A stretch of 64,000 nt of DNA from Lepidodermella squamata (taxonomy: Eukaryota; Animalia; Gastrotricha): positions 1,984,001 to 2,048,000 of the forward strand of contig JBLDXI010000013.1 in NCBI GenBank assembly GCA_047495785.1, written 5' to 3'. Numbering within the stretch: the stretch's first letter is position 1; the number at the start of each line of letters is the position of its first letter. Shown here one piece after another: positions 30,156 to 61,821 of this stretch. The position numbers and the translations under genes were made by a program. The notes under the pieces were generated by a model. The model worked only from the letters and a program-made list of their open reading frames with translations. It ran no database searches and had not been told where the DNA came from.

Positions 30156-30644
30156 ATGTCTCGAATTTTGATCATCTGTGCTGTTTTGGCCGTCGCCTGT
30201 GTCTTCGCTGACCCGGCTGGTAATCAACGAGGTCAAGGCAATGTGCTAGTCGGAGCTCAAGCCGGTCATTTGTCTGCCGGTCTCGGCGCTCGCGTTGGGG
30301 TCAACGCCTCATCGTCATCGCCCAGGCCTCAAAAGCCGGCTATCCAGTGGCTGAAATACAACCGTTGCGTCTGCTATTGCGCCGATATGCCTCAGTTCAA
30401 CCAGACCAATAATCAAAATCAGCAACAACAGCAACAACAGCAGGGTGTCCGTCAACAACAAGCCGGTGGCAATAACCAGCGCCAGCAACAACAACAGGGT
30501 CAAGGTAACGGTGCCCAAGGTCGTCCCGAGCACCATGGCGCAGGTTTTTTCAAGCCCCCAGTCAACGTGACTTCAAGCGAGTTCAGCTCATCGGACTACA
30601 AGGTTCGTCCTGGATGCTACTGCGCCTGCCCCAACGTCCAGTAA
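30156..30644 (+). CDS. Secreted Cys-clamp family protein, divergent member with poly-Gln loop
   Basis: Signal peptide, RCVCYC ... FSSSDYKVRPGCYCAC with Q/N/G-rich sequence between. TATAAAA at ~30063. Confidence 0.8.
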   Translation: MSRILIICAVLAVACVFADPAGNQRGQGNVLVGAQAGHLSAGLGARVGVNASSSSPRPQKPAIQWLKYNRCVCYCADMPQFNQTNNQNQQQQQQQQGVRQQQAGGNNQRQQQQQGQGNGAQGRPEHHGAGFFKPPVNVTSSEFSSSDYKVRPGCYCACPNVQ

Positions 30645-30991
30645 TCCGATCGAAAAATCGGTTGATGATTCATTTAAATTATGTAGTTTTTTGCTTTAAT
30701 TGCTTACAAAAATCTGACCCACTGGTATGGGCAGTAAATGGCCCTCATAGTTTTTTCAATAAGAATACGGAGTATAAATAAGTTCTGAGAATAAATACTC
30801 TTTTCAACGTATAAAACGAGTCTGTTTTTATCAATGCGCCCTCGCAAAAAAGCGTACCTGATTTCGGAGTTGCCAAGCAGAGCGCCGTCCAGAATTTGCA
30901 CGCATCCTACATAATTCCAAGGGTATAAATGAATTGCCATTTTTTATGAGAGAGTAATTTCTTGAAATCGTGAATAACATTTCTTTCGGCG

Positions 30992-32085
30992 ATGGCATTA
31001 GAAATCCTGACGCTTTTTGCCACAATAGTTACACTTGCGACAGGTTACCCTTCTTACCAATCGAAGATTCCCAATGGCGCTTCAGTGCCAAATCCTTGCC
31101 TTTCTGGATCGATTTGGACTGGTTAATAAACTTCAGGAGCTTTATTCCAATTTGCTGTTAATACGCGATTTATTTCAGGTGTTGGACACCAGAAGACAGC
31201 AGGAGGTGGCGTAGCCAATCAGTTTGGCCTGGATTTTCAGAAAGCCGGACATAAATGGACCGTTGAGCTGTGTCAAAAAGACAGCGATGGTAATTTTTCG
31301 GGTTTTTCGAGATTTAGGTGTAATTTTTGCTTGAAGGGGATGGCTCGACCAATGGCCAAGAGCTCGGCGATCCCGGATGCCAATGGCAACCCGGGGATAC
31401 CCCGTCTGCCAGCGCTTCTGGTCACCCTGGTATTTGCGAGCCGATCACATCTTATCAGTGCCAAAATAGCACAGCTAATGCATTTCTGTCATCAATCGGC
31501 TGCAGTTCCGGCTCGGCTTCGATATTAATTGTTAATAGCCCACCTGCCGTGGTGGTTCCAGTCGTCAGCGCGATTTCAAATACTAATTCGAACAACAATA
31601 ACAATGCGAACCGAAATACCGCGTCGTCTTTGAATACCAACTACAACAATAATTACAACAGTAACGGCAACGTCAACAACAATAACAACTATTACAACGG
31701 CAACACCAACACCAACAATAACTACAACGGCAATAGCAACGTCAACAGCTACAACAACAACTACAACACCAACAACAATAACTACAACCCCAACAACTAC
31801 AATAACTACAACAGCAACAACTACAATCCCAACAACTACAATAACTACAACAGTAACAGTAATAACTACAACGGCAACAGCTACAATCCCAACAACTACA
31901 ATCCCAACAACTACAATCCCTACAATAGTTACAACAGTGGCTACAATAATAACTACAATCGAAATGGCTATTACTGGAATAATTACGGAAACGGATACTA
32001 CGACAGCAGTGCCGAAAGCTGGAAGTTTTCGAAAATATTGTTGGGCGTGAGTGCAGCTTCAATAGCTCTGATTGCCAGTTTTTAA
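30992..32085 (+). CDS. Temptin-domain protein with long Asn/Tyr-rich tail and GPI-type signal (T2; 3 exons)
   Basis: MALEILTLFATIVTLATG signal peptide. Introns at WTG|VGH (~31122-31178) and DSDG|D (~31291-31336). NGQELGDPGCQW..HPGICEP, (NNYNP)n tail, hydrophobic C-terminus. Confidence 0.85.
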
Positions 32086-33377: not shown

Positions 33378-35470
33378 ATGACCTACATCTTAGCAGCTCT
33401 CTTTGTGCTGCCACTAATCGCTGCAAGACCAGAATTTCAGCAAGAAATTCCTAATGGAGGAGCCGTGCCTCATCCATGCAGCCCGGGCGAATTGTGGAAA
33501 GGCGTCGGCCATCAAATTGTTCAGGGCCAGGGTCCTCTGAACCCATTTGGCCGCGATTTTTTAGCGGCTAGGAAAAAATGGACAGTTGAACTTTGCCGGA
33601 AAGATAGCGATGGAGATGGCAAATCAAACGGAGAAGAATTGGGCGATCCGACCTGCAAATGGGCGAAAGGCCAGGCGAACCCGCCGCCAGCTGGCAACAA
33701 CAAAATCAGCCACCCTGGCGTCTGCGAACCCATTGAATCGTCAAGCTGTCGGCAGAAAAACTCATTCCTAGACAAAATCGAATCTTGCAATAAGGTACTG
33801 CAGAATCCGAAAAAGGATTGGTGCCCGCAGCTTAAGAGTGAAAAGGCAGTCAAATCGATCGAACTAAGGTTCAACCGAACAGTTGTACCAGCTAACGACA
33901 CTATTTACATGTGCCAGTACTTCGATCTGCCAAGTGACCAAGACTACCAAATAATCGCTGTAAGAATTTAGGCTGAAAATGATTTTTTTTAAATTTCATT
34001 ATTTACTAGTGGGAACCAATTATTGACAACTACGAACTAATGCATCACATTTTGCTATCCGGCTGTAATGGACCAGCTGAAGAGGGTATGTTAGCTCGTT
34101 CGAAGAAGTTCAAGGAGCCAGAGAGATGTCCTATGATGCCTCCGATTTGCTCTGTCTGGTCGATTGTTTGGGCTTTTGGGTAATAGCAATCCTTACCAGC
34201 TTTTCATATTCTATACTATGATTTTTAAAACAGCCAAGATAGCCGTTGCTATGGTAACGATACTGGCCTGTTGATAGGCAACAGCACCTACCGCAAGATT
34301 TTGATGCAGCTCCACTACAACAATCCGAATTTGCTTGAAAATATTGTCGATTCGGGTGGTGTCAGGATTTACTATGTCCCTCAGAAGCGGAAGTACAACG
34401 CAGCTATGCTGACTGTTGGCCAGCTCAACTTTGCGATACCACCCCAGGTCGAAACGTTCGCTGCAACAGCCAACTCGTTCCCAACGGCCAACTGCAGCCA
34501 GGCTTTGCTCGGCCGGGATAAGTTCTACTTGACATCAGTCTTCTTCCACATGCATAAGCTCGGGGTTTATGCGAAGCTGTCGATTCGGCGTAAAAATGGC
34601 ACCGTCGAGCAATTACTTGATGATTACGCGACCTACGACACGCCTCCGTTTTTGTGGTGGGAGACGCAGGAAGAAGCTCCTTACCTTCAAGCCGGCGATA
34701 ACATTCAAATGGAATGCCGATATTCGACCCTCGAAGTGAAGGAGGGCTACACGTTTTTCGGTGAACGAACGTCCGATGAAATGTGCATCGCCTTCATTGA
34801 ACTTTTCCCGCGGCCGAGGAACATGAGCTACCTGAACTTCTTATCTGTTGATGAGGTAATTTGCCCATTTCTACCTAGAGCTTGAATCATCTCTTACTAT
34901 TTATGAAGAATAATGCTTGCACCTGGTCGCCTTTGATGAGTGGTCGAAATGCGAGTTCGTTCAGCGTCCAAAATTGCAAAACAACCCCGTTCCGCGAGAA
35001 GCTTGCCATGTTGGCGAATACCACTAATGAAGGTCATTTATTGAAAAACTGCGGATCAAAGGTTTACCCAGCTGTTAATTGCTCACGAGTTTGCAGAAGG
35101 TAATGGCTTGAACACGTTAATCTTTAATTATAACTGAATCATCCCTAATACTAGCTTTATCGAGCGAAACAACCTGACCAGCGATCCTTGTATTGAAAAC
35201 GTAAAGACGTTTGTTGCTGCGACTAACTTGGGAGTTTTCCCAAGTTACGAAGACGTCTATCACGTCTATTCGCATATGGAGTTGTGCAGGTACGAAATTC
35301 TGGGCATTACACCACCGGCACGGACGACTACGACCGTTACTACCACTCAGCCATCAACGGTAGTAACTATGGCTGCTTTGGCGAAAGACAAAGCTTCATC
35401 CGGTTCAGTCATAGCTGCGACCATTCCGGTGATCATCTCCAGTGTTCTACTGATGATCAACAGCATTTAA
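33378..35470 (+). CDS. Temptin + Cu type II monooxygenase, copy F; Thr-rich stalk + GPI-type signal
   Basis: Uninterrupted temptin exon, MHH, QLHYNN, FHMH, DEMC. Introns at IIA|WE, AFG|Q, VDE|N and CR|F. TTTTVTTT stalk then ASSGSVIAATIPVIISSVLLMINSI. Confidence 0.9.
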
Positions 35471-35774
35471 GGCTACAATGCAAATAAGTGATTAGAAATT
35501 CAAATACCTAATTCAAAATAAGCAAGATAAGTAGCTCGAATACTGAAAGTAATTTTTCTGCTTCGGAAGAATTCGGGAGAAATAAACCCCCAAAATACCC
35601 GATTGGATTTAGTCCGGTAATTATCGGTATTTTACCGAATTTCTCAGCATTGTTAAATTTTACTTGACAAGTTTCACAGTTGATGAGCACTTTCATGGCA
35701 ATTTCGATACAATTTTAGAATTTTAGATCCAAACTATCTACAGTTGTGTTTGAAATGTTGTATCAGTGTGATGA

Positions 35775-38049: not shown

Positions 38050-40038
38050 ATGTTGCGCTTTACCCTTCTAATCGGGTCTGTTGCTGTCGCCAGCGCCCGG
38101 CCAGAATTTCAGCTAGAATTACCCAACGGGAATAAAGTTCCGCATCCTTGCGATGCCAGTCAAATGTGGCCGGGAGTCGGCCACACGTTAGCACAAGGCC
38201 AGGGGCCCTTCAATCAGTTTGGTCGTGACTTTCTCGCCGCGAGGAAGAGATGGACATCAGCGCTATGCCAAAAGGACAGCGATGGCGATGGTAAAACTAA
38301 CGGTGAAGAGTTGGGCGATCCGACTTGTACCTGGGCTAATGGTAGGCCGGTCCTGGGAACCGCCACAGGTCACCCAGGCGTTTGCGAGCCCATTGATTCG
38401 CCAATCTGCCGGGAAAGGAATGGTTTCCTAGATAAAATCGACGCTTGCAACGCAGCGCTGAATAAGCCTCCAACAGATTGGTGCCCTCAACTTCAGGCCG
38501 AAAGCGATGTCAAAACTATTGACCTTCGATTTGAACGAACGGCCGTTCCAGCGAATGATACCGTTTATTACTGCAAGGCCTTTGATCTGCCAAGCGATCG
38601 GGATTATCAAATTATTGCTGTAAGGTGTCTCATAATGAGCCGGCTGACTTATATATACGAAATCTTTTTTTTCAGTGGGAAATCATGAACGACAATACCG
38701 AACTACTTCACCACATGGCTGTTTTCGGTTGCAATGGGCCGGCTGAAGAAGAAGCTCTGGCTAAGACAAAGCAGTATGGCTCGCCTGAAAATTGCCCAAT
38801 GATACCAGCTCAGTGCACAGCTTGGTCCGTAGTCTGGGCCTTAGGGTATGGGAGCATAGATTCATCTTTCAGCTGAAGGTAAATTTCCAATTTTTTCAGG
38901 CAAGACAGCCGATGCTACAGCAGTGATACTGGAATTTTGATCGGAAACAGCACATACAGACGAGTTCTGCTACAGCTGCATTACAACAATCCCAATTTGA
39001 AAGATAACATCATCGACTCAAGTGGGATACGATTCTACTACGTCCCAAAACGTCGCCAATATGACATGTCCATGTTGACAATTGCTCAGTTGGATCTGGC
39101 TATTCCACCTGGGCAAGATGTGGTGACAGCTAACGCTACGTCTTTCCCACAGTCGACAAACTGCAGCCAAATATTGTTCGGAAATGAGAAGTACTACCTT
39201 ACATCGGTTTTCTTCCACATGCATCAACTTGGAAACCACGCCAAACTCGCGATTCGAAGGAGAAACGGCACGTTGGAATGGCTGATTGATGAATACGTCA
39301 CCTACGACAACCCCAAGTTTCTGTGGTACACGAGCAAAAACGAGGCGCCTGCGCTTCAAGCTGGAGATACCTTGGAGATCGAATGCGGCTACACAACTCA
39401 GTACAAAACTGAGGCTTACACGTTTTTCGGGGAGCGAACCTCGGATGAGATGTGCGTCGCTTTCATCGAACTATTCCCACGGCCGAGGGATATGAGCTAC
39501 CTTAATTTCATGTCTGTCAGGACGGTAAAATAGCTTGTAACCTTGAAATTAAGCGAGCTTGAATTGTTTTTTTTTTGACCTCAGAAAAACTCGTGTCAAT
39601 GGAACCCCATGTTCTCAGGCTCGTACCAGCCTGAAACTATCGAGAATTGCGTGGTTGATCCTTTCAGAGGCAAGCTTTTCGGCCTGGCTGCTAATCCGGG
39701 CGAAGGACATCTCATGGGTATCTGTCCTTCCAACGATTATCCGGCCAAAGTTTGCTCACCAATCTGCAAAAGGTTAGTGGAATCCAGCTTATCAACGCTT
39801 GTAAATTAACGCTTATTTCTGTGTAATTAGTTTCCTTCTGAGAAATGGGCTGGTAAATGATACTTGCACGGCGACCGAAGGCGTCTTTGTACCAGCGACA
39901 GCCATGTCTTATTTCCCGACATTTGAGAGCTCTTATCGGGTCTATTCTCATATGAATCTTTGTTTGACTGAAATCCGGGCAGCAGTTACAACGACGACAA
40001 GACCTATGGGCCGAGGACGCCGAAGTTTGCCGTTATAA
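38050..40038 (+). CDS. Temptin + Cu type II monooxygenase, copy G (no GPI tail; ends TTTRPMGRGRRSLPL)
   Basis: Paralog of F with the same intron positions. LHH, QLHYNN, FHMH, DEMC. Stop TAA 40036-40038. Confidence 0.88.
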
Positions 40039-40812: not shown

Positions 40813-41850
40813 ATGGGTTTCGGTTCATTCTCCTGCATGACTGCTGCTTTGGTGGCGATTGTTGCCTTCAGCAATGTTTATTCTGCTCAAACGGGCAATG
40901 GCAATAGCAATGGCAATAGCAATGGCAATGGCGGCAGTCCGCCAGCGGTCAATGTAACTCTGTACAGTGAATGCAAGTGCTACTGTCTACCGCCACCACC
41001 CCAAGGTGGTCCAGGTGGTCAAGCTGGCCAAACAAGTCGAAGCAGACGTCAAGCTCAACAAGGTGGCCAAGGTCAGGGCGGTCAAAGCAAAGCAACGAAA
41101 GCCCAAGGAGGTCAAGGTGGTCAAGGTCAAGGTGGCCAAAGCCAGGGCGGTCAGGGCCAAGGCGGTCAGGGTCAAGGCGGCCAAGGCCAAGGAGGTCAGG
41201 GTCAAGGCGGCCAAGGCCAAGGAGGTCAGGGTCAAGGAGGCCAAGGTCAGGGCGGTCAGGGTCAAGGCGGCCAAGGCCAAGGAGGTCAGGGTCAAGGAGG
41301 CCAAGGTCAGGGCGGTCAGGGTCAAGGAGGCCAAGGAGGTCAGGGTCAAGGTGGTCAAGGTCAAGGTGGCCAAAGCCAGGGCGGTCAGGGCCAAGGCGGT
41401 CAGGGTCAAGGCGGCCAAGGCCAAGGAGGCCAGGGTCAAGGAGGCCAAGGCCAAGGAGGCCAGGGTCAAGGAGGCCAAGGAGGCCAGGGTCAAGGAGGCC
41501 AAGGCCAAGGAGGTCAAGGCCAAGGAGGCCAGGGCCAAGGCGGTCAAAGTCAAGGCGGCCAAGGCCAAGGAGGTCAGGGTCAAGGCGGTGCAAACAAAGC
41601 CCAAGGTGGTCAAGCCCAAGGAGGCAAAGCAGGTCGAAGGAAACGTCAAGCTGGAGGTAACCGAGGAAGCCAAGGTCAAGGACAGCAGAAAGGACCCGGT
41701 GGACCTCCTCCTGGTCCTATTCAGATCCCTGATAGCCAGGCCATTCCTGAGTTGAAGAGTTCGGACTACACAAATGGAACGTGCTATTGTGCCTGCCGCA
41801 AGGGATCTTTGGTTACAACCTTCCCGATACAACTCGGCAATCAGAATTGA
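40813..41850 (+). CDS. Secreted Cys-clamp family protein with ~195-aa (GQGGQ)n loop bounded by furin sites
   Basis: Signal peptide, NVTLYSECKCYC, RSRR ... GRRKR, IPELKSSDYTNGTCYCACRKGSLV. Intronless, with AATAAA downstream. Confidence 0.9.
   Translation: MGFGSFSCMTAALVAIVAFSNVYSAQTGNGNSNGNSNGNGGSPPAVNVTLYSECKCYCLPPPPQGGPGGQAGQTSRSRRQAQQGGQGQGGQSKATKAQGGQGGQGQGGQSQGGQGQGGQGQGGQGQGGQGQGGQGQGGQGQGGQGQGGQGQGGQGQGGQGQGGQGQGGQGQGGQGGQGQGGQGQGGQSQGGQGQGGQGQGGQGQGGQGQGGQGQGGQGQGGQGGQGQGGQGQGGQGQGGQGQGGQSQGGQGQGGQGQGGANKAQGGQAQGGKAGRRKRQAGGNRGSQGQGQQKGPGGPPPGPIQIPDSQAIPELKSSDYTNGTCYCACRKGSLVTTFPIQLGNQN
41050..41634 (+). repeat. Coding 15-bp minisatellite (GGCCAAGGAGGTCAG-like) encoding GQGGQ
   Basis: Visible tandem degenerate 15-mer array. 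Confidence 0.9.
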
Positions 41851-44020: not shown

Positions 44021-44617
44021 ATGGGTTTCGGTTCATTCTCCTGCATGACTGCTGCTTTGGTGGCGATTGTCGCCTTCAGCAATGTTTATTCTGCTCAAAC
44101 GGGCAATGGCAATAGCAATGGCAATAGCAATGGCAATGGCGGCAGTCCGCCAGCGGTCAATGTAACTCTGTACAGTGAATGCAAGTGCTACTGTCCACAG
44201 CCACCACCCCAAGGTGGTCCAGGTGGTCAAGGTGGCCAAGCAAGTCGAAGCAAACGTCAAGCTGGAGGTAACCAAGGTCAGGGTCGAAGCCAAAGCCAAG
44301 GCCAAAGTCAGGGTCGAGGCCAAGGCCAAGGACAAGGCCAAGGACAAGGCCAAGGACAAGGACAAGGACAAGGCCAAGGCCAAGGACAAGGCCAAGGACA
44401 AGGCCAAGGACAAGGCCAAGGCCAAGGACAAGGACAAGGACAAGGACAAGGTGGTCAAGGGCAGCAGAAAGGACCCGGTGGACCTCCTCCTATTCAGATT
44501 CCTGATAGCCAGGCCATTCCAGAATTGAAGAGTTCGGACTACACAAATGGAACGTGCTATTGTGCCTGCCGCACGGGATCTTTGGTTACAACCTTCCCGC
44601 TACAACTCGGCAACTAA
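44021..44617 (+). CDS. Secreted Cys-clamp family protein with (GQ)n loop and one furin site (RSKR)
   Basis: Near-identical termini and upstream region to the 40813 gene. The loop is a 6-bp CAAGGA/CAAGGC repeat. Confidence 0.9.
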   Translation: MGFGSFSCMTAALVAIVAFSNVYSAQTGNGNSNGNSNGNGGSPPAVNVTLYSECKCYCPQPPPQGGPGGQGGQASRSKRQAGGNQGQGRSQSQGQSQGRGQGQGQGQGQGQGQGQGQGQGQGQGQGQGQGQGQGQGQGQGQGQGGQGQQKGPGGPPPIQIPDSQAIPELKSSDYTNGTCYCACRTGSLVTTFPLQLGN

Positions 44618-48030: not shown

Positions 48031-48516
48031 ATGAGTCTCGGATCATTCTCTTCCTTAGCTGCAGCCTTGGTGGTGGCTCTCGCCATCAGCCAAGCTTACG
48101 CTGCCACAACTAGTGGCAATAGCAACAGCAACGACGATAGGCCACCCAGACCAGCGATGAATGCAACTCTGTACGACGAGTGCAAATGCTATTGCATGGC
48201 CAAACCACCACCAAGAAACGAAACCGCCAATTCGAATAACGGCAGGCAAAACAACAACCAAGGCCAGCAGAGTCAGCAACGCGGCCGCGGCGGACCACCG
48301 CAGGGTGGCCCTGGTGGATTCGGCGGACCCGGTGGCCCCGGTGGACCCGGTGGGCCCGGTGGCCCAGGTCCATGGGAGTCTCAGATTCCGTCAGACCAGC
48401 TCATTGACGAATTCAAGTTGGAAGATTATGCGGTCAGCATGTGCTATTGCGCATGTTCGAAGGGATCTTTGGTTAAGGTTATTCAGCTCGGTAATAACGA
48501 TAGTAATACCCAGTGA
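48031..48516 (+). CDS. Secreted Cys-clamp family protein, (GGP)n loop
   Basis: MSLGSFSSLAAALVVALAISQAYA signal peptide, NATLYDECKCYC ... EFKLEDYAVSMCYCACSKGSLV. Confidence 0.9.
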   Translation: MSLGSFSSLAAALVVALAISQAYAATTSGNSNSNDDRPPRPAMNATLYDECKCYCMAKPPPRNETANSNNGRQNNNQGQQSQQRGRGGPPQGGPGGFGGPGGPGGPGGPGGPGPWESQIPSDQLIDEFKLEDYAVSMCYCACSKGSLVKVIQLGNNDSNTQ

Positions 48517-49626: not shown

Positions 49627-50121
49627 ATGACTCTCGGATCATTCTCTTCTTTAGCTGTAGCCTTGATGGTCGCTCTTGCCATCAGCCAGGCTTACTCTGC
49701 GCCAGCGATTAGCAACAGCAACAGCAACAACAACAACGGTCTTCCACCTAGGCCAGCGATGAATGCAACTCTTTACAATGCGTGCAAATGCTATTGCATT
49801 CCCAAGCCGCCACCAAGAAACGAAACCGCTAATTCGAATAATAATGGCAGACAAAACGGCAACCAAGGCCAGCAGGGTCAGCAAGGTCAGCAACGCGGCC
49901 GCGGTGGACCCCCTCAGGGTGGCCCTGGTGGATTCGGTGGACCCGGTGGTCCAGGTGGCCCAGGTGGCCCGCCCAACGTGGAGTCTCTGATCCCGGCGAA
50001 CGAGCTCATTGCCGAATTCAAGTCGGACGATTACGCAACCGGCATGTGCTACTGCGCTTGTTCGAAGGGATCTTTTGTTAAGGTCATTCAGCTCGGTAAC
50101 AATAATAGTAATACCCAGTGA
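49627..50121 (+). CDS. Secreted Cys-clamp family protein, Q/G/P loop
   Basis: Signal peptide, YNACKCYC ... EFKSDDYATGMCYCACSKGSFV. Confidence 0.9.
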   Translation: MTLGSFSSLAVALMVALAISQAYSAPAISNSNSNNNNGLPPRPAMNATLYNACKCYCIPKPPPRNETANSNNNGRQNGNQGQQGQQGQQRGRGGPPQGGPGGFGGPGGPGGPGGPPNVESLIPANELIAEFKSDDYATGMCYCACSKGSFVKVIQLGNNNSNTQ

Positions 50122-50859: not shown

Positions 50860-51525
50860 TGGTTCAGATTGGTAGGTCATCTAAGAGTTTTACAAAGTGA
50901 GTTTGAACTCCGGGTATGTACCGCGTGCTTGGAAAATCGCGATTATGGTTCCCATACTCAAAGAGTGGAAGGACTCGCGCATGCCAGATTCCTACAGACC
51001 GGCGTCCCTTCTGCCATCACTCGGCAAAGTGCTCGAAGACATCGTAGCTAAATTTCTTTGTCGGAACAACCTGCTTCCATCCCACCAGTATGATTTCAGG
51101 TATCTTAGGTCTTAGGTCGACCATCGACCCGGTGTTCAGGTTCATCATTGACGTCGGTCTGCCATATCCAACGACAAAAGCTGGTCGCTATTCTCTAGGA
51201 CATTAAGTTTGATATAAATGGCAGAACGGCCTGCGACTCACCGAAAGACGCTACCAGGACCCTATTCTAAGCCTTCAGCTACACGATAGCAGCCAGCGTC
51301 GCGACATTAAGAAAGCGCCTACGCTCAATCGGGGTGTGGTGTAACAAATGGCACCTCCGCTCAAGTCCGGGAAAGTGTGAAGTGATCGTCTCCGGGAGAT
51401 ATGGCACCTCGACTCCAGTACGCATTGAGCTTTCCACCGCTCAGGCTAACTTGGGATCTACCTCTCACACCCCAGCTAAGTTGGAATCAACATAATGAAA
51501 TAATTGCCTCAAAACTGAACATCGG
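50860..51525 (+). mobile_element. Degenerate LINE (non-LTR) reverse transcriptase fragment
   Basis: GYVPRAWKIAIMVPILK..DSYRPASLLPSLGKVLEDIV..NLLPSHQYDFR is the typical pre-RT/RT start. LTPQLSWNQH..IASKL is a C-terminal motif. Frameshifted. Confidence 0.85.
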
Positions 51526-51993
51526 AAACTTTCGGAAAACACAGCTTTGTCCAAAGTTACCCCGCTATGGTGTATTAGTAATTCGAGTCAAACCAATGTT
51601 TGCAGACGTGTTCAACAGCACAATGCCGTCGTGTAGCCTGAGCCTGGAATAAAGCGAAATAGTAAAAAATAAAAGTTTTAGAAATTTCAGCAGTGACAAT
51701 TTAATTGCTCTGAGCTCATACCATGTTTGTTATTAGGTTGTTTTTTCTAACCCGAGCAAAGACAATCACACCTCCGAGGGTTTCAGCGTGTAAACAGCAC
51801 GACGTCGATGGTGTGTTCTCCCTCCGGTTTGAAAACTCGTGTTCGAGCGGCGCTTTTTTGCAACAAAAGAATTAGGTGAAATGCCACACCAATATCAATT
51901 TGGCAGGAATGATTGCACCTCCTTAGTGTATTTAAGGGGCAGGTTGAAGCGGCAAAATTCATCATTCATCATTTCGATACAAAATCTTCAACT

Positions 51994-52488
51994 ATGAGTC
52001 TCGGTTCATTCTCTTCCTTGGCTGCAGCCTTGGTGGTCGCTCTAGCCATTAGCCAAGCTTACTCTGCCCCAACAAGTGGCAACAGCAACAGCAACGACGA
52101 TAGGCCACCCAGACCAGCGATGAATGCAACTCTGTACGATGAGTGCAAATGCTACTGCGTGCCTAAACCACCACCACCACCACCACCAAGAAACGAAAGC
52201 GCCAATGCGAACAGGCAAAATAGTCCGCAGGGCAATCAAAATCAACAGCGTGGACCTAACGCCTCTGGTCGCGGTGGACCCGGTGGACCTGGTGGACCTG
52301 GGGGACCTGGTGGACCCGGCGGACCCGGGGGCCCAGGTCCATGGGAATCTCAGATTCCGTCAGACCAGCTCATTGGCGAATTCAAGTCGGAAGATTACGC
52401 GGTCAGCATGTGCTATTGCGCTTGTTTGAAGGGATCTTTGGTTACGGTTATTCAGCTTGGTAATAATAATAATAATAATTCCCAGTGA
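51994..52488 (+). CDS. Secreted Cys-clamp family protein, poly-Pro + (GGP)n loop
   Basis: Close paralog of the 48031 gene: CKCYC ... MCYCACLKGSLV. Confidence 0.9.
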   Translation: MSLGSFSSLAAALVVALAISQAYSAPTSGNSNSNDDRPPRPAMNATLYDECKCYCVPKPPPPPPPRNESANANRQNSPQGNQNQQRGPNASGRGGPGGPGGPGGPGGPGGPGGPGPWESQIPSDQLIGEFKSEDYAVSMCYCACLKGSLVTVIQLGNNNNNNSQ

Positions 52489-53400
52489 AAACTTGAGATA
52501 CATCTACATGAGATTTCATCCGATGACCCACTTGCATTTGACTTTTGCACGCTCTTTTCTGTGTCATGATTAGATAACCCCTTGAATAAATAAAACCGCC
52601 AGCTTTCTTTCAAACAAATTTTATTGTTATTCTTGCTAAAGAGCAACGTCTGTGCAAAAAACCGCTCGTTTTCACAAGCAACGCTTTTTCGTATTCTCAA
52701 AGAAATTCAGGCAGGTCCGCAATTTTTAATAAGGATCAATCGGTCAAAGCTTTAATTTTGCCGTTAATCAAGCGTCTATGAAGCTGAGGCAAACTGTAGC
52801 CGCTGAGGCAAAAGGGGCGATTGTCTCTTCGTGGAATCTTGATTAACGGCGCCAGCGCCGCAGAAGAAAGGAGAAGGGCGATCGACTTTGTTTTGGTTCT
52901 AGGGATTGAGTCTGTGCCTCTTCGCTGTGGCCACTCTCGACTACTCGCTCCCCAACACTCGCATGGTACCATGGCGACACGCTGTAAGTAAATTATTACA
53001 GATTCAATTTGCACTGGCGTAGACGGCAAAGCCAATATGCTGGCTGCTGGGAAAAAAACTGTCTCGACGTTCTTAGCGGCCGGTTTAGCTTTTCCCCATT
53101 TCACGAATTATGAAAAAGTAACATAAGCTTTAAAGCCGTCCATGAAGTTTTATGCCCTTCATCAAGTTTGCCGTCGGCCGGGTTCATGTGTCGCGGGCGT
53201 TGAGCGTGAACTCAAGCAGACCAACTACAATAATAACTAGTTCCTAATTATAGAGAACAAGTATTAGAAAGAAATCGGTAGACGCGTGGTGATGATGCCA
53301 ACCAAGAATTAGCGCTTTGATTATCACAGGGGCTGAGGGTACTTAAAGCGGAGCAGAAGCGGCAAAATTCATCGTTGAACATCAGCTACAAAATCCAACT

Positions 53401-54114
53401 ATGACTTTCGGTTCATTCTCCTCTATGACTGCAGCTTTGGTGGTAGCTGTTACCTTCAGCTATGCTTACTCTGCCCCAAACAGCAACGACATCAATCATA
53501 GTGCACAGCAGTGGGGCAACACATCTCTGTATAGTGAATGCAAATGCTTAATGCCGTCATACCAGAATCGAGTATCAGCACTTCTTCACCGCATGTTAAA
53601 TCAAACTCCAGGCGTGCATATGGAAGACTACAGGATTCCCGATAATAAGATTCCTGCAGAATTCAAATCAAACCTATACACAAATGGATCGTGCGGTTGC
53701 GCGTGTCGTATAGGATCCCTGGTTACTACCTTCCCGATGAAACTCCCTAACGCCTTAAACACTACACTAGGACTCAAACCAAAGCCAGGCGACGGAAGAG
53801 CCAGGTCGTTCACTATAACTACGTATAATGTTTGCAAATGCTTCCAGATAACGCTACCTTCACTTCCACATCATGACGCATCTACGCCTGTTCCCGACGT
53901 TCCACATCATGACGCATCTACGCCTGTTCCCGACGTTCCACATCAACCTATTGCAAATGTGCTTCCGATCCCTGCAAATCAGATCCCTGCAGAGTTCACG
54001 TCGCCACTTTATAAACCTGGCCCATACTATTGTGCATGCCGCGATAGTTCCCTGAACACAACCTTCTCGACAGATTTCCCCGACCATCCCCGAGATTGGT
54101 ATGAGCAGTGGTAA
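53401..54114 (+). CDS. Secreted Cys-clamp family protein with two tandem clamp modules; His/Pro-rich loop in module 2
   Basis: YSECKC..IPAEFKS..CGCAC, then YNVCKC..IPAEFTS..YYCAC. A 36-bp direct repeat encodes PHHDASTPVPDV twice. Confidence 0.85.
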   Translation: MTFGSFSSMTAALVVAVTFSYAYSAPNSNDINHSAQQWGNTSLYSECKCLMPSYQNRVSALLHRMLNQTPGVHMEDYRIPDNKIPAEFKSNLYTNGSCGCACRIGSLVTTFPMKLPNALNTTLGLKPKPGDGRARSFTITTYNVCKCFQITLPSLPHHDASTPVPDVPHHDASTPVPDVPHQPIANVLPIPANQIPAEFTSPLYKPGPYYCACRDSSLNTTFSTDFPDHPRDWYEQW

Positions 54115-55455
54115 CTTGAACCTTGGCTTATTTTCATATTTTCCTTACCTTCGCCTGAATTTAAGAACACATTTTTCGGTCATTTGATGATATTCTATTA
54201 GAATAAAATTTCCCGATGCTAACTTAATCTAATTTTCAACTGATGATGATGGAACTAGGCGGACCATTTTCTGTGACTGACAACTGACAACGGACCAGCA
54301 TTAACAGCTTCCAATGTAGTGTGACACACGATTTTATTAAGGTGACTTTCGTGTCACATCGAGTGGCATCAAAATTTTATGGCTGCGGAGTTTTGTGACA
54401 TGATCCGCATGGGGGTGGTCAGACAATTTCCAAAATGACCAGCTTTTTGGAAGATGGCAGACCATGTGACAATGGACCCGCGTGACACCTGACAGACCTG
54501 TGTGACATCGAGTCCTGAGTCGTGACATGCGTATTTCATTTTGACATTTGACCTTATCATATGCATATGCCATCAGATATTTATACAGGGTGTTCAAGAA
54601 ATAATTGTTGGGCTGTTTTTGGAGTTGAACTTCAGCCAAACGAAACGCGATATGTCTCCCGTCGCGTGCTGTCAGAGCAGGAACTTATTTTTCATGAAAA
54701 CCGGAAATTAGTCTTGTCCTGAATTCTGCCTTACATAGCACCCCGAAGAAATAATTCTTGGACCCAGACCTACCCAATTTAGTTTGGGAAAAATGCCCTT
54801 TGAAGTATTTTCATGGGTATAGATTTGCGTTAGAGTTTAGGAATTCAATATTCGATTAGTAAAGTCGACAAGCGATATCGATTGCTGCTATCGATTTGAC
54901 CATATAATATCCATTTACGTAACCCGTAGATCTGATTTTTTTGGACCCATGATTATTTTGACCGATGTTGAAATCTGAAAATAAATTTTACATTATATAA
55001 ATATTTTAGAAATAAATAAATTGCATCCAAGGTCGAGCGCCAAACTGCATAAAAAATGTTTCAGATTTCAATTTGCACCCGCGTAGACGTTAAGCCACCA
55101 AAGAAAAAATTGCCTCGACCTTTTCGCGACAGGTTTACCTCTCTATTGCACGAATTTTGATGAAACAACATGGGCTTTAAAGCCATCCATGATGTTTCAT
55201 GCTTTTTTATCGAGTATGCGGCTGCCGGGTTCATGCGTAGGACGTCGAGCATGAACCCAAGCAGACCAACTGCAGTAATCAGTTATCTGATTCTATTGAA
55301 AAATGGTAGTCGGTCGGCAGACGCGTGGTTGACGAGGCTGAAATTAAAGTGATATAATGCCAGCCAAGAATTTGTGCTTAGATTATCACAGCGGCTGAGG
55401 GTACTTAAAGGGGAGCTGAAGCGTTAAAATCCATCTTTGAACATTTAACTGCACT

Positions 55456-56211
55456 ATGGGCTTCGGTTCATTCTCCTCTATGATTGCAGCTGTGGTGGCA
55501 GTTGTTGCCATCGGCTATGCTTACTCTGCCCCTAACAGCATCAGCAACAGCAACATCCCCGGGCTTGGCGAAACAATACAGGGCAATATTTCTTTGTACG
55601 GTCAATGCAAATGTGTAATGTTTTCGCTTCCATGTACGCGTGGCCCATCAGCTGCCGAAAGTGCAGCATTTTATCGTAGCGTATTGAATACACTCCCAGG
55701 TGTTCATTTGGAAGAATACCTTATTCCGGATGATAAGATACCAGCAGAATTCAAATCGGACCTCTACACAAATGGCACATACTTTTGTGCATGCCTCAAG
55801 GGTTCTCTGGTTACAACCTTCTCGAAAACAATTCCGACTAAATTCATCGGCCTCCAACCAGCCACTCATCGTTGCATACCCTATCCTAATGTGACCTGCC
55901 CTCCACTTGTTCACGATGTCTCACTCGACTCATTCCAAGAGTGTATGGTGAAGAACGTTCTGAACGGTGAAAAGCAGGCCAATGTGTCTCTGTACGATGA
56001 TTGCAAATGCTTCATGCTGACGTTACCACCACTTCCACAGCTTGACTATTTGCATGTTCACAATCATCCTACTCATCCTCATGAGCGAGTCAATGCATCC
56101 CTGATTCCCGAGTTCAAGTCAGAACTTTATAGAAATGGCACTTATACTTGCGCATGCCGGAACGGATCCCTGAAAAAAACCATCCCGATACATCTCAAGC
56201 TCATTGACTAA
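55456..56211 (+). CDS. Secreted Cys-clamp family protein with two tandem modules; His-rich loop in module 2
   Basis: YGQCKC..IPAEFKS..YFCAC and YDDCKC..HVHNHPTHPH..IPEFKS..YTCAC. Confidence 0.85.
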   Translation: MGFGSFSSMIAAVVAVVAIGYAYSAPNSISNSNIPGLGETIQGNISLYGQCKCVMFSLPCTRGPSAAESAAFYRSVLNTLPGVHLEEYLIPDDKIPAEFKSDLYTNGTYFCACLKGSLVTTFSKTIPTKFIGLQPATHRCIPYPNVTCPPLVHDVSLDSFQECMVKNVLNGEKQANVSLYDDCKCFMLTLPPLPQLDYLHVHNHPTHPHERVNASLIPEFKSELYRNGTYTCACRNGSLKKTIPIHLKLID

Positions 56212-56744
56212 TTCTTATATAGGTATCCCTAACTTATATGCTTGATCTTAATTTTTAGTAGCACACATTTGCCCTGTAATTTGATGACATTCTATTAGAA
56301 TAAAATGTCGGGGAAAGCCTGGTAACATGGTAACATGTAACATAATCAAATTTTGAACTGATCATTTAAAATAAAGCTAACAACGGTCTTACCAATCGCT
56401 TAATCACAAAAGCTGCCATTTCGAATTATAATACTATAGTTAGATTTCAAGTTTCAAGTCATCGAAGGATTGTGGAATTTTTCAAAGGAGAAAACTCAGA
56501 ACTCATATTACTCAGGTACTATACCAGCTTCTTATCCTGCTGAAAAAGCTGTCTGATAAAAGTTTAAAGGTAACAGGTGCATGATGCAATTGGAATATAA
56601 CACGCCATCTACTTAAACCACAGCGATACACAAATAAAAAATCAACAAATTTGCAGCAGGATAAAATTTCAACACGTGACTTATTTCTGTAACTTGTAAA
56701 TTGATTATACGAAGATGACATAAGATTGGGACAATGTCGGCCAC

Positions 56745-56945
56745 TATATCTACGTATGATGTTTGCAAATGCTGCCAGGTAACGTTACCTTCACTTCGAC
56801 ATCATGACGCTTCTAATGCTGCGTCTCTTGCCGGCTTTCCAATTCATCCTCATGTCATCCTCATGCTATGCAACCTCGATCCATGCAAATAATATCCCCG
56901 CGGAGTTCAAGTGGCAACTTGATAAAACTGGCTCATACTATTGAC
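56745..56945 (+). pseudogene. Pseudogenic fragment of Cys-clamp module 2 (53401-like)
   Basis: TYDVCKCCQVTLPSLRHHDAS, a frameshift, then IPAEFK..GSYY followed by TGA where Cys is expected. Confidence 0.8.
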
Positions 56946-57282
56946 GGCAGTCAGTACGGCTGATTTCCGCCAATATGTGCTAGATCACATTAACGACAGG
57001 CCGAAGTTCATTCGCAAGCGGCTCCATGAAGAATCATCCTCGTCTGACGATCAAGTATCCAACCTAAAGCAACAACTAAAGGTTCAAGTCGCAACGTTTG
57101 GCCCGGAATCTGGTGCCAGCAATTTAGTTCGGCACATCTTATATTGCCTATCGTTTTCACGAGCGAAGAACGACCGCAACTTTTGCAGATCTTTCAAAAC
57201 ACCCCCGAAGCAAAACTAGGCATCAATAAAACACCGTTTATATTTCTTGAAAAAAACAATAGAAACGATGATGATAAACAGA

Positions 57283-60003
57283 TTAATAATTGTTGTTGAT
57301 CTCATCTCGCACCAGCATGTAAGCGTAAATATGAACGCCGATCAAAGCAAGAATAGCTACAACAGCCGACACGTTATCAATCAATCGGATCAGCGTAATT
57401 TTCAGGCAGACAAACTTAACTCGAGTCTGGTTGAACTTGTTCGGCGCCTTCTTGTCGAAACTCATCGCAACTGAATTTGTCATATTATGAACAAGCAAAT
57501 GGTAAGCCGTGATGATCAAAGATATCCAAGTTAGGTAACGCATATAATCAGCCAGAAGCACTGATTGCGAGGTATGCGGAATGAACGAAGTTACCTGAGT
57601 TTGCCCTACAGCCAAAGCTAAGAGTAGCGTAACAGAAAAAGCTGATCTTTCAGGTCTTATAGGCGGAATAAGATACGAAGACATTTGTAAAAGAGTTAAC
57701 ATAAAATTAGGTAAAGCAATGTTTAACAGATAATAATTTGGCCTTCTCGCGACTGTAATGGTGAAAGTTGCGACACTTGACAACGTGCCGTCCTGTTTGA
57801 CAGCCCCCAACGGCATTTCTTTGCAGCCTGTGATGAGCCATTCAGTGTCAGTTTGCTTTGAAGGACAAAGCATAATCAAATCGGCGAACAGGACATTCTG
57901 CAGGGCATGGCGCATAGTGAAGGTGAAACTGCAATTGGCTGAATCGAATGGAAATAACGAGAGATCATGAGGGCAGCGCGAAGAAAAAAATCCTATCTTG
58001 AAATGGTTGAAGTACAGCGATTGATTCAGACTAACGCGAGTAGGCGTGAGGGTAACAAAGATTTCCTCGCCATACCCGTCGCCTTTCATCTGTTCATCTT
58101 CAATGCTTGACGTGAACGAGTAGCTAGGTATCCACACTAGCTCGGGGCTTGCTCCAAACAGTCGCTCAGCCCCGCCTTGATTACCGAGCGCGCTGTAGCC
58201 AAGCCACGACACTTTTCTCACCAAACTCAACGAACTGCACGTCGTAACATTCCAATGCAGGAACATCCGGCCCGAAATTACTATTGTTTCATCGACAGAG
58301 TAGCTTTCCATGCGCTGTACGATGAAAGTCGTCGATATGGCGTTTGGATCGCCGTTGTTTGGCGGAAACATTATTTTCGGGCTGAAGTCATCGCACGCTT
58401 GCAAGAGATCTTCAAGTCTGAACACAGGGTTGCTTTTTTCCGGCGACATGTTCGCAAGCATTAATTGGAGTAAAGCAATCGGGTCGTCAACTACGTTTGA
58501 CATCGGAAACAAAGGCGATGCCGGCGCAGGGGCTGACGAGATAGAAGTCTCATTTCCTGCCAAACAAGCCGTCCTTTGTTCAACAAGCTGATCCGACGAC
58601 AGTGCAGCTCGATGCAAAGATAAACAAGCCGCCTCGACTTTTACCATCGGCCTACCGATCCGTTTCGCCAGGTTCAGCGTTCCAGACAGCGTCGCAGGTG
58701 CGAGAAGTTGATCCGCCAGGTTGAACACGAATTTATTGTCGCAAAAGCCACGGAAGGTCTTTTTAGGCGCGTCGTAAACCAGGGCGACAAATTGCCAGGT
58801 TTTCATCTTGCACGGTCCGTTGACGTATGAAGTTGATTCAGGGTTCACAAAAAGATTATCTGGGTCAGGATAGTTGGCCCAGAAATGAAGAGAAACGCCT
58901 CCACTTGTTGTCAAGTATTCAATTATAGGCGTCATCTCGCCCTTTGAATTGATGAAAACTGTCCACGTCCAAGAACCGTCTGTTCCCAAGTTCAATAGCG
59001 GGCTGTTGAAATTGATATATTGTTGATCATTTGAGCCCAATACAACGGCACTGCTATTTTGCCCATTCGGACCTTTAGTGTATGTCAATTCGGGCGCGCC
59101 AGGGTTCAATTTACCGTGCAGGTTGTTCCCACTAACGTCGTTCATAGAAAACTCGGCAGACAGTGGCCAGTTTCCGATGATTCCAAGTAGATTTGAGGGT
59201 GAGGTGCATGCATGGGCTATCGTATCAGGTGTATTGTAGCCGGCTAGACAAGCCGCCTTAAGCATAAGCAAGTCTGTCATAGACGCGTCAGATAGAAAAA
59301 TGGTCAAGCACGAAGCTTGCAGTTTTGTCGGAATTTTATGGCCGACTCGTTTACCGAGGTAGAACGTTTGCGTGCTCATTGCCGCCTGCCCTTTCGCTGG
59401 GACGTTGAAGACGAAGCTCGAATCGCAGAAGCCGCGATACATTTTAGCATCCGCATCGTAGACTAGGGCGACAAATTGCCAAGTCGTAAACTGACATGGC
59501 TGACGTGGTGCCTCTGAACCATCCGCAGCATTAAGGTAGAAGAGGTTAGGTGATGGATATCCCGCCCAAATGTGTAAACCCCAATCATTTGGCGGTGCAT
59601 TCAGGTACTCAAGGATTGATGTCTGTGCACCATCTGATTTGAAAAACAGGGCAAATGTCCACGATTGGCTCTTAGCGAATTCATAAACTGGATTTTTGAA
59701 CATAGGGAATTGGTCATCATCCGGGCCTATGTCGATTGCGGAATTGGGCAACCCGCCAGGGCCGGTTGAATAGGTCGGTGTGGAACCTGTTTTACTCCAC
59801 TGACCGTGCAGATTTTTCCCGCCGACGTCATTCAAACAGTACGTTGATGTAAGAGGCCAAACAGCAAGTGGCTTTGGTGCCTTCGGCATCATGTTAGCAG
59901 GCAGCTGGGCCTCAACGATGCAGAAACTTGTAACAGTGAGAAAAACATATGCTCCTAACCGTAGAAACATTGTGCTATAAGCGAATGCAGTAGGTATGAA
60001 CAT
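57283..60003 (-). CDS. Cys-loop pentameric ligand-gated ion channel subunit (nAChR-like, divergent) fused to two N-terminal LamG/ConA-like domains; intronless, 906 aa
   Basis: Signal peptide. Two repeats WPL..NDV.G.NLHG..W.F..F..LH.WA..WQFVALVYDA..(A)CL at ~59870-59240 and ~59185-58555. VWIPS (loop A-like), Cys loop CPHDLSLFPFDSANC, RRPNYYLLNIALP (M1), PERSAFSVTLLLAL (M2), M3 and M4. Confidence 0.9.
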   Translation of the reverse strand: MFIPTAFAYSTMFLRLGAYVFLTVTSFCIVEAQLPANMMPKAPKPLAVWPLTSTYCLNDVGGKNLHGQWSKTGSTPTYSTGPGGLPNSAIDIGPDDDQFPMFKNPVYEFAKSQSWTFALFFKSDGAQTSILEYLNAPPNDWGLHIWAGYPSPNLFYLNAADGSEAPRQPCQFTTWQFVALVYDADAKMYRGFCDSSFVFNVPAKGQAAMSTQTFYLGKRVGHKIPTKLQASCLTIFLSDASMTDLLMLKAACLAGYNTPDTIAHACTSPSNLLGIIGNWPLSAEFSMNDVSGNNLHGKLNPGAPELTYTKGPNGQNSSAVVLGSNDQQYINFNSPLLNLGTDGSWTWTVFINSKGEMTPIIEYLTTSGGVSLHFWANYPDPDNLFVNPESTSYVNGPCKMKTWQFVALVYDAPKKTFRGFCDNKFVFNLADQLLAPATLSGTLNLAKRIGRPMVKVEAACLSLHRAALSSDQLVEQRTACLAGNETSISSAPAPASPLFPMSNVVDDPIALLQLMLANMSPEKSNPVFRLEDLLQACDDFSPKIMFPPNNGDPNAISTTFIVQRMESYSVDETIVISGRMFLHWNVTTCSSLSLVRKVSWLGYSALGNQGGAERLFGASPELVWIPSYSFTSSIEDEQMKGDGYGEEIFVTLTPTRVSLNQSLYFNHFKIGFFSSRCPHDLSLFPFDSANCSFTFTMRHALQNVLFADLIMLCPSKQTDTEWLITGCKEMPLGAVKQDGTLSSVATFTITVARRPNYYLLNIALPNFMLTLLQMSSYLIPPIRPERSAFSVTLLLALAVGQTQVTSFIPHTSQSVLLADYMRYLTWISLIITAYHLLVHNMTNSVAMSFDKKAPNKFNQTRVKFVCLKITLIRLIDNVSAVVAILALIGVHIYAYMLVRDEINNNY

Positions 60004-61350
60004 AAATTCAGTCGAGCAGTCGGCTGTGAAATAGTGTCTATTTTTTGTTAATAAAAACTTTAATTTCCTTAAATTTAATGAGCATTTCGAGGGTTTTGTT
60101 TGGTTATATGGCGTGTTGATCAGCCACCATCGTCGAATTTCCGTTGCTCAAAATAGCTGACCAAGAATATTTCGAACAATCACAAACCATATTCCTTTCA
60201 CCCCTCTTTGAACGTTCTCTTACTTCAAGAAATGTACTGAAAGCTGAAAGATGAATCAACACAGTTTTGAATCCCTTTGAATTAGACAAATTCCGACCAG
60301 AACAGCAATATAATTTTTTAACAAGGTAATAGAGAAAGTCAGTTTTGAAAATAATGTAGACGGAGGCAGCTTGGCAGGCTTTCAGTCGAGCAGCAAAAAT
60401 CGGCCGCAGAAACCAGAATTTCTGCGGAAAATCCAGAAAATCGGACAGCATTTCGTCTCCACTTTTCTTGAATTCGGCGGTGTTTCGTGGGTCGAATCAC
60501 GCGTTTTCAACGCGAGCCATTTTCAAAGAACCAGAGATGAAATTCCGATGTCGAGTATCTTTCATCGCATCGAAACGTGTGGTTCAAATCGAACCAGTTT
60601 CTTCAGATGTAAAGGCGCAGTGTTTTCGCGAACTTTGATTTCGAAGGAAGCAGGTTTCAGCGTTGATGGGTTTTCGAAACATTCGGCTGTGAATGCGGCA
60701 GCATTGCTAATCGGAGCAGAACTCTGGGGGCAATTTTTCGTTAAATTTGAGCATAAGGTTGGACAGAGTAGAATTCAGAAAATCGACGTTCAAAGTGAGA
60801 CGAAATTTGAACGAATTAGAAACAATGAGCGAGAATTAAGAGAAAGCTATTTTTCAATTCAAATGAAATTTCAAGATGAAATTTCAAATTCAAATTCAAA
60901 CTGATTCACCTCGTCTCCACTCGCCTACCGGCTCGTTCCATTCGTTTTCTTCGATCTATATTTCGTGCTTCATTCAAAAATAGATTTTTACTCATGTTAA
61001 ATCATACATATGTAAAATACATACGTTTTATAAAGGTCAGAAAGGACAATTTTTTGCCCTGAGCTCTTGTCATGTTTTCATGGCGTGCTTTTTTCCACCT
61101 CCAGCATGCCAACGGCAAGTCGGACTCTAAGGTTATTATTACTGTGTAAACAGCACGACCGCGATGTTGCGTTCTCATTCTGGTTTGAAAACGCGCGTGT
61201 TCGAGAGGCGGTTTTTTGCGAAAAAAAGTTAGGTGAAATGCAACACCAACATAAATTTGGCAGGAATTATTGCTTCTGCTCAGGGTATTTAAGGATCAGG
61301 TTGAAACGGCTAAATTCATCATTCCACATTTCGATCCAAAATCTCTAACC

Positions 61351-61821
61351 ATGAGTCTCGATTCATTCTCTTCCTTAACTGCAGCCTTGTTGGTCTCTCT
61401 TGCCATCAGCCAAGCCTACTCTGCACCATTAATTGGCTACAACTACAGCAACAACAACGACGGTCTGCCACCCAGACCAGCGATGAATGCAACTCTATAC
61501 GATGCGTGCAAATGCTATTGCATGCCCAAGCCACCAGCAAGAAGCCAAAGTGCCATTGGCTCGGCGGTTATGGCTTGGCCGAATGGCGGGCAAAACGGAT
61601 CGCAGGGCAATCAAAATCAGCAGCTTGGACCTCTCACTGACCGCGGCGGTCGTGGTGGTCGGGGTGGCCCACCTAACATGGAATCTCTGATTCCATCTGA
61701 CGAGATCATTGACGAATTCAAGTCGGACGAATACGCAACCGGCATGTGCTATTGCGCTTGTTCGAAGGGATCTTTTGTTAAGGTCATTCAGCTCGGTAAC
61801 AGTAATAGTAATACCCAGTGA
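61351..61821 (+). CDS. Secreted Cys-clamp family protein, G/Q/N/R loop
   Basis: Signal peptide, YDACKCYC ... EFKSDEYATGMCYCACSKGSFV. Paralog of the 49627 gene. Confidence 0.9.
   Translation: MSLDSFSSLTAALLVSLAISQAYSAPLIGYNYSNNNDGLPPRPAMNATLYDACKCYCMPKPPARSQSAIGSAVMAWPNGGQNGSQGNQNQQLGPLTDRGGRGGRGGPPNMESLIPSDEIIDEFKSDEYATGMCYCACSKGSFVKVIQLGNSNSNTQ

Follow-up and report, generated by a model that had tools for sequence, protein, structure and literature searches.

Introduction

The Sgs3, Sgs7 and Sgs8 genes of Drosophila form a cluster of small secreted adhesive genes whose products have a common signal peptide, Cys-containing ends and a central repeat that is variable or absent; in wheat high-molecular-weight (HMW) glutenin and the cnidarian minicollagens, Cys-bearing ends surround a Gly/Gln/Pro or Gly-X-Y core, and disulfides formed at the ends give rise to an elastic or tough polymer. 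At a smaller scale, the protegrins are hairpins held by two disulfide rungs across a CxC/CxC pair. The theta-defensin BTD-2 carries a ladder of disulfides, Cys3-16, 5-14 and 7-12, across a CxCxC/CxCxC pair (PMC13408038). The nematode pharyngeal cuticle is built from families of secreted low-complexity proteins that are restricted to the lineage and have a high content of Cys, Pro and Gln (APPG, IDPA, IDPB, IDPC, NSPB and FIPR), and the cuticle of C. elegans is disulfide-rich (PMC9629831). For gastrotrichs, the Lepidodermella squamata genome paper names adhesive tubes as key characters of the phylum and does not treat cuticle or adhesive proteins (PMC11660948), and we found no characterised protein in the literature on gastrotrich cuticle, scale, adhesive or egg-shell proteins. 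Here we describe a family of cysteine-motif genes in a window of 64,000 nucleotides from L. squamata (assembly GCA_047495785.1, contig JBLDXI010000013.1, positions 1,984,001 to 2,048,000 of the forward strand), the products of which have two short conserved blocks separated by a middle segment of widely differing length and composition. All positions given below are those of the window.

The reading we favour, which in our estimation is about equally likely to be right or wrong, is that these are lineage-restricted small secreted clamp-plus-loop proteins that form parts of an extracellular material. The two short beta-strand blocks of each module would pair antiparallel and be held together by two or three disulfide rungs (C1-C6, C2-C5 and C3-C4), a ladder that would close a mostly disordered stretch of 44-265 residues, rich in Gly, Gln, Pro or His, into a loop. 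The clamp would be a small, stable and protease-resistant unit, and the loops, altered by repeat slippage and specific to each subfamily, would set the hydration, elasticity and cohesion of the material. Putative destinations are the body or pharyngeal cuticle and scales, the secretion of the adhesive tubes, or the egg envelope.

Results and Discussion

A tandem family of two-block genes

Open reading frames (ORFs) were listed over 28-64 kb, and the motifs were scanned for over the whole window. The family comprises nine intact single-exon ORFs, here called g1 to g9 in their order along the DNA, and one broken fragment, all on the plus strand between 30156 and 61821 (Table 1); an earlier note on this DNA had described nine intact, intronless, same-strand genes and one pseudogene, and the ORF listing, the motif scan and tblastn all agree with that description. 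The nine genes hold 11 intact modules, with two tandem copies each in g7 (53401) and g8 (55456). When all six frames of the 64 kb are scanned with regular expressions, the N and C motifs occur nowhere outside the nine ORFs and are absent from the minus strand, a confinement that excludes chance as their origin. The broken fragment changes frame midway, has a stop just ahead of the C-A-C and lacks a signal peptide. The member at 30156 (g1), which the same note had set apart as divergent, is recovered at E 3e-12 (search space of 20,000 proteins), with both blocks aligned, by a hidden Markov model (HMM) of the other eight members, and on this evidence is a true member of the family. In g4, g6 and g9 the true start is an internal ATG, at 48031, 51994 and 61351 respectively, and the TTG-extended frame upstream of it is conserved 5' flank. 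The GC content of the window is 40-52% in 2-kb bins and mostly 40-47%; that of the published L. squamata assembly is 43% (PMC11660948).

Two blocks are common to the members: N-x-T-L-Y-x-x-C-K-C (the N block), to which Y-C is often added, and I-P…E-F-K-S-x-x-Y…C-Y-C-A-C (the C block). All nine begin with a hydrophobic leader that in most of them opens M-x-x-G-S-F-S. The residues invariant in the alignment are the Tyr of L-Y, the C-x-C of the N block, the Glu of E-F, the Tyr ahead of the C motif, and C-A-C. A tree built from the conserved columns groups g4, g5, g6 and g9 with g1 on a long branch, g2 with g3, and the four modules of g7 and g8 with each other.

Between the blocks the proteins differ greatly. 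Spacing between the Cys motifs is 44-265 residues; approximately 25 to 250 residues had been given before. The (GQGGQ)n, (GQ)n, (GGP)n, poly-Gln and His/Pro-rich chemistries described for this segment are all present: beside the arrays of g2 and g3, the middles of g4 to g6 consist of 9-nucleotide GGP units preceded by an Asn/Gln stretch, that of g1 is poly-Gln, and those of the second modules of g7 and g8 are His/Pro-rich, with a perfect 36-nucleotide repeat in g7. The first modules of g7 and g8 have an ordinary middle of 48-55 residues (48 in g7) that is conserved between the two genes. Middles can be aligned within a subfamily, where they differ by insertions and deletions of repeat units, and their chemistry shifts only between subfamilies. 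Outside the array the products of g2 and g3 share 89% of their residues, whereas the arrays themselves are unlike in both unit and length; we therefore see the middles as evolving by slippage and by replacement between subfamilies, while remaining alignable within them. The description of the segment as a hypervariable low-complexity loop therefore overstates the variation, and it fails for the first-module middles of g7 and g8, which are not low-complexity.

Predicted secretion and possible processing

Secretion was judged from Kyte-Doolittle windows and the -3/-1 rule. The highest-scoring 11-residue window near the N terminus (residues 1 to 30) reaches 2.3-3.4 in all nine proteins. A cleavage-type site follows, with its -3 and -1 positions occupied by small residues, and reads A-Y-S then A-P in six of them. 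There is no second hydrophobic segment: the 19-residue maximum of the mature part is at most 1.5 in all nine, and hence neither a membrane span nor a tail of the kind that receives a glycosylphosphatidylinositol (GPI) anchor is present. The N termini are thus signal-peptide-like, as had been proposed, and the proteins are predicted to be secreted by the classical pathway. The mature products are about 132-320 residues long, most with an isoelectric point (pI) of 5.3-7.2, and their conserved blocks are neutral to acidic. An N-x-S/T sequon stands directly ahead of the L-Y of the N block in 9 of the 11 modules, and an N-G-T/S sequon directly ahead of the C motif in five. These sequons count among the signs of secretion, and the proteins are probably N-glycosylated.

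The same precursors could be imagined to be cut. A prohormone-like precursor of B-C-A layout would lose its middle by excision at dibasic sites and yield a two-chain disulfide-linked peptide, or Gly/Gln peptides, and the RSRR and RRKR sites flanking the repeat array of g2, the RSKR of g3 and the copper type II monooxygenase-like genes nearby are all in keeping with such a scheme. Dibasic sites are, however, absent from seven of the nine genes, the Cys pattern is unlike that of insulin, no Pfam hormone family is matched, and the neighbouring enzymes are temptin fusions. With the sites present in g2 and g3 only, we reject prohormone processing as an explanation for the whole family and regard it as very improbable overall.

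Predicted strands and the logic of the cysteines

AlphaFold2 models were made from an alignment of 11 rows, and strands were read from the DSSP strings. Module 1 of g7 has a mean predicted local distance difference test (pLDDT) of 61.5, rising to 73-76 over the conserved blocks; its strands are 11-18 and 21-23 (the N block including C-K-C), 67-69, 74-77 (C-A-C-R) and 81-89 (L-V-T-T-F…), and between the strands of the two blocks there are only short helices. The g5 model has a mean pLDDT of 47.5, with the middle below 45 and in coil, and its only strands are T-L-Y, C-K-C-Y-C, six residues across C-Y-C-A-C, and V-K-V-I. As the long N strand lacks a sufficient partner in its own half, the models appear to join both blocks in one small sheet, a contact of low confidence that is deduced from the DSSP strings.

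The mature proteins have six cysteines in g1 to g6 and g9, twelve in g8 and nine in g7. Seven modules (those of g1 to g6 and g9) have C-x-C-x-C in both motifs. In three others (module 2 of g7 and both of g8) the N motif has lost its third Cys and is C-x-C, and the first Cys of the C motif has changed to Tyr, giving CKC … Y-x-CAC; in the remaining one, module 1 of g7, the third Cys of the N motif is lost and the first of the C motif retained. The third N-block Cys (C3) and the first C-block Cys (C4), which are the positions closest to the loop, are in other words kept or lost together in 10 of the 11 modules. Covariation of the loop-nearest pair is what would be expected of antiparallel strands bonded C1-C6, C2-C5 and C3-C4, and it supports the ladder in a directional if thin manner. 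An intramolecular ladder is what we infer from these patterns and the models together. The earlier proposal of a disulfide-closed scaffold is plausible: strands are predicted at the two blocks only, though at a pLDDT of 56-76, and one Cys pair covaries. Both observations suit pairing between molecules just as well.

Bonding between molecules deserves attention in its own right. The N strand of one molecule could bond with the C strand of a second one, in a head-to-tail or domain-swapped arrangement, and so act as a staple; linear or branched polymers would result, whose low-complexity middles would carry load as elastic spacers, much as in HMW glutenin or the minicollagens. In favour of this, the Gly/Gln/Pro repeats are bracketed by Cys blocks close to both ends, the odd number of Cys in g7 would leave one of them free, and the two-module products of g7 and g8 could serve as branch points. 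On the other hand, both strands of a chain are produced in the same lumen of the endoplasmic reticulum, where their high effective concentration makes intrachain closure the more favourable outcome; the AlphaFold monomer models already satisfy the strands in one chain; and the short ordinary middles in the first modules of g7 and g8 resemble parts of a compact domain and not spacers. We regard the intermolecular arrangement as rather unlikely, and as the nearest competitor to clamps closed within one chain.

Several points tell against such intrachain clamps as components of a material. The two models are weak, at the mean pLDDT values given above and with so small an alignment; the number of cysteines in g7 is odd; and on the tree the covariation comes down to one clade, in which C3 was lost once and C4 changed one to three times. 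In addition, a closed loop alone bears no tension, so that an elastomer role would require further links, and RNA was checked for only three of the nine genes (g6 to g8). By analogy with other secreted proteins, a role in cuticle or scales, an adhesive or the egg envelope is what we infer for the family; that the His/Pro-rich loops might bind metal is speculation.

Evidence for functional, transcribed genes

Between close paralogues the ratio of non-synonymous to synonymous substitution rates (dN/dS, Nei-Gojobori) is 0.17-0.45, and for the 15 residues of the N block it is 0.10-0.24 in every pair that differs there, which by this measure shows the family to be under purifying selection. An AATAAA stands 82-146 nucleotides past the stop in all nine genes (at +146 in g1). 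In g2 to g9 a TATTTAA- or TACTTAA-type box lies about 65 nucleotides before the ATG and is followed some 30 nucleotides later by a AAATTCATC-like motif; g1 has a TATAAA box at -93. With these signals the nine genes look like complete single-exon transcription units. A spliced-leader acceptor before the ATG is not evident: g4, g6 and g9 lack an AG in the 20 nucleotides ahead of the ATG, and a TATA-like box is present in all nine genes.

For an RNA check, the public run X1 (2015, labelled 'RNA?') was compared with 51800-57300, that is, with g6 to g8. Its contigs on the three genes (Table 1) all lie inside the predicted units, and none falls on 52720-53455, 55112-55663 or 56768-57300; the remaining coverage consists of two short pieces at places where the depth of the DNA run X2 is raised, and these are taken for repeats. 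One contig continues at 54208, 94 nucleotides past the g7 stop and just beyond the AATAAA, into what we take to be the SMART cDNA amplification primer. We read X1 as cDNA, and g6, g7 and g8 as transcribed without an intron in their coding part. Transcription, on which the earlier note had made its interpretation depend, is in this way supported for these three genes, with contigs confined to their units. We note that X1 contigs also show 'opposite strands' joints, which are typical of amplification palindromes.

The alternative that these are non-functional sequences, either chance ORFs or decaying repeat copies, could appeal to the low-complexity sequence and to the lack of a homologue in any search. 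It is nonetheless hardly credible, for dN/dS is well under 1, nine frames are intact against one broken fragment, the promoter and poly(A) signals are conserved, and the cDNA contigs lie exactly on genes. Among the X2 differences listed, the sole coding insertion or deletion is of 3 nucleotides and the ten intergenic ones are of 1, 2 or 7 nucleotides, and substitutions stand at about 0.4% in coding versus 0.9% in non-coding DNA; this variation agrees with constraint and is only indicative.

Run X2 dates from 2024, and over 51800-57300 it has many substitutions and small insertions or deletions relative to the window in intergenic DNA. Its contigs match the window at identities of at least 99% (27 contigs), 95-99% (25) and 90-95% (44), and they represent either another haplotype or strain or diverged repeats in the region.

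Searches for relatives

The earlier note recognised no named domain in these proteins, and all of our searches lead to the same result. No Pfam-A family scores above its gathering threshold for any of the family proteins. TrAA12, at 24.8 bits against a cut-off of 30.9, was rejected as a low-complexity artefact, its match sitting on the (GQ)n array, and Sha_B_N was likewise rejected, at 15.8 and 13.4 bits against 24.4, with matches that span 11-27 residues of the N motif. An exhaustive HMMER search with a profile of the nine proteins gave no match at E <= 0.001 among 1,835,955,588 representative proteins. A word-indexed sequence search with g5 gave no matches, a profile search of the PDB none at E < 0.1, and a search of the ESM Atlas by features no relative; of 92 matches to the N-motif pattern in the Joint Genome Institute (JGI) metagenomes, none was confirmed as a relative. 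The family thus has no detectable relatives.

Fold searches were made with the model of g7 module 1 (pLDDT 61.5, so that a miss proves little): Foldseek against the PDB had a best E of 6.1, VIA-align in its wide search gave no Z of 2 or more, and no template modelling (TM) score in the ESM Atlas exceeded 0.37. Because this model is weak, the blank fold searches are not evidence for a new fold.

Neighbouring genes

The window also contains a tandem series of at least eight gene copies in which Temptin_C is fused to monooxygenase domains of the copper type II, ascorbate-dependent class (Pfam E 4e-37, 5e-13 and 8.5e-07), and these copies are interleaved with the cysteine-motif genes (Table 1). 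Two further temptin-domain proteins, at 26799-27440 and 31327-32085, are without the monooxygenase; each has a long tail of low-complexity sequence rich in Asn and Tyr, and its hydrophobic C terminus may serve for anchoring by GPI or in the membrane. The ORFs at 13599-14339 and 16794-17534, about 3.2 kb apart, have identical 246-residue products and reflect either a very recent segmental duplication or a duplication in the assembly.

Temptin is a secreted pheromone, and the interleaving of the family with temptin-domain genes (Pfam) is one of the features that might point to a soluble, non-structural role, for example as a hydrated brush or lubricant in mucus, as a signal, or as a factor in defence or binding, with the ladder serving only as protection against proteases. 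Cystine-ladder hairpins are familiar chiefly from host-defence peptides, and the family is undergoing rapid expansion and diversification. The blocks, however, are neutral to acidic, with most pI values at 5.3-7.2, and hence are not cationic amphipaths, and Gly/Gln/Pro repeats in such bulk, as long as 265 residues, are typical of materials and not of ligands. We consider a soluble role distinctly unlikely.

Two other ORFs lie within the cluster. The minus-strand ORF at 57283-60003 encodes 906 residues in a single frame on the strand opposite to the family, and its C-terminal part has a weak match to the membrane region of neurotransmitter-gated channels (E 1.7e-4, below the Pfam cut-off). Between g5 and g6, at 50897-51115, the translation reads as a reverse-transcriptase-like fragment, probably the remnant of a retrotransposon of the type without long terminal repeats (non-LTR).

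Table 1. Cysteine-motif genes, the related fragment and other genes of the window (positions are those of the 64,000-nucleotide window; aa, amino acids; nt, nucleotides).
Feature	Position	Strand	Remarks
g1	30156..30644	+	162 aa, divergent; poly-Q/Gly middle; CVCYC and CYCAC; C motif is nearly the protein end
g2	40813..41850	+	345 aa; 265-aa middle with ~33 copies of a 15-nt GQGGQ unit; RSRR and RRKR either side
g3	44021..44617	+	198 aa; (GQ)n middle with ~27 copies of a 6-nt unit; single dibasic site RSKR
g4	48031..48516	+	161 aa; Asn/Gln-rich stretch, then (GGP)n middle
g5	49627..50121	+	164 aa; (GGP)n type; AlphaFold model made
g6	51994..52488	+	164 aa; poly-Pro plus (GGP)n; cDNA-run contigs 52025-52545, 0 mismatches
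g7	53401..54114	+	237 aa; two tandem modules; nine mature Cys; cDNA-run contigs ~53494-54208
g8	55456..56211	+	251 aa; two tandem modules with Cys-containing linker; cDNA-run contigs ~55779-56293
Pseudogene fragment	56734..56944	+	tblastn; 77% identity over 26 aa to g7 module 2
g9	61351..61821	+	156 aa; g4-g6 subfamily; middle shrunk to (RGG)-like stretch
Secreted chitin-binding (CBM_14) protein	4247-5188	-	Neighbour
Temptin_C-monooxygenase fusion	8383-9589		Pfam
Temptin_C-monooxygenase fusion	13199-14339		Pfam
Temptin_C-monooxygenase fusion	16439-17534		Pfam
Temptin_C-monooxygenase fusion	19359-20547		Pfam
Temptin_C-monooxygenase fusion	21785-23097		Pfam
DXD glycosyltransferase (Gly_transf_sug)	23728-24894	-	Neighbour
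Linker-histone gene	28856-29254	+	Neighbour
Temptin_C-monooxygenase fusion	33378-34885		Pfam
Temptin_C-monooxygenase fusion	38050-39533		Pfam
Temptin_C-monooxygenase fusion	62892-63578		Pfam

Comparison with known systems

An expressed, tandemly expanding orphan family is a concrete candidate for a gastrotrich material. Should the ladder be real, one small stable unit would clamp very different disordered sequences, which would be of interest to protein engineers and biomaterial scientists; should it be false, the family is still a clean case of lineage-specific secreted low-complexity families, as in the nematode cuticle.

Resemblance to silk, which had been suggested from the repeats, is one of composition only: flagelliform and MaSp2 silks have short repeats of the same Gly-Pro-Gly and Gly-Gln types. 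Silks of these kinds are huge and carry conserved spidroin domains at both termini, whereas the arrays here are of 20-265 residues and Pfam finds no spidroin terminal domain in the family, so that homology to silk is rejected. The Sgs3, Sgs7 and Sgs8 genes share with the present ones a tight cluster, conserved ends and a middle of variable length, but the Sgs repeats are Thr-rich and O-glycosylated, the Cys patterns differ and there is no homology. The nematode pharyngeal-cuticle families are alike in being multigene, secreted, low-complexity, rich in Cys, Pro and Gln, and without homologues beyond their phylum; they differ in showing no sequence similarity, and the split CxCxC pair is absent from their descriptions.

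In the geometry of its cysteines the family comes closest to the theta-defensins, with CxCxC … CxCxC spacing in 7 of the 11 modules and both motifs predicted to be strands, while the CxC … CxC variant in three of the 11 lacks the loop-side rung and corresponds to a two-rung hairpin as in protegrins. Theta-defensins, however, are cationic, backbone-cyclised primate peptides of 18 residues made from two nonapeptides, in which a tight turn connects the strands; in the present family 44-265 residues separate them, the proteins are neutral or acidic and there is no sequence relation, so that the likeness is one of geometry only and the connectivity is a proposed one. A bolder proposal, which we hold tentatively and think doubtful, is that the family uses a theta-defensin-geometry ladder at the scale of a protein as a genetically encoded clasp, which makes lariats of interchangeable disordered loops as long as 265 residues, and that it constitutes a new gastrotrich-specific module from which scales, cuticle or duo-gland adhesive are built. 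If so, it would offer a first molecular handle on the extracellular materials of this phylum, for which we found none described. HMW glutenin and the minicollagens belong to other folds and lineages, and their disulfides are intermolecular, in contrast to the intrachain closure favoured here. In its general plan, judged by analogy with these proteins, the architecture of the family is nonetheless of a known kind, that of secreted material proteins in which Cys-bearing ends surround a repetitive core.

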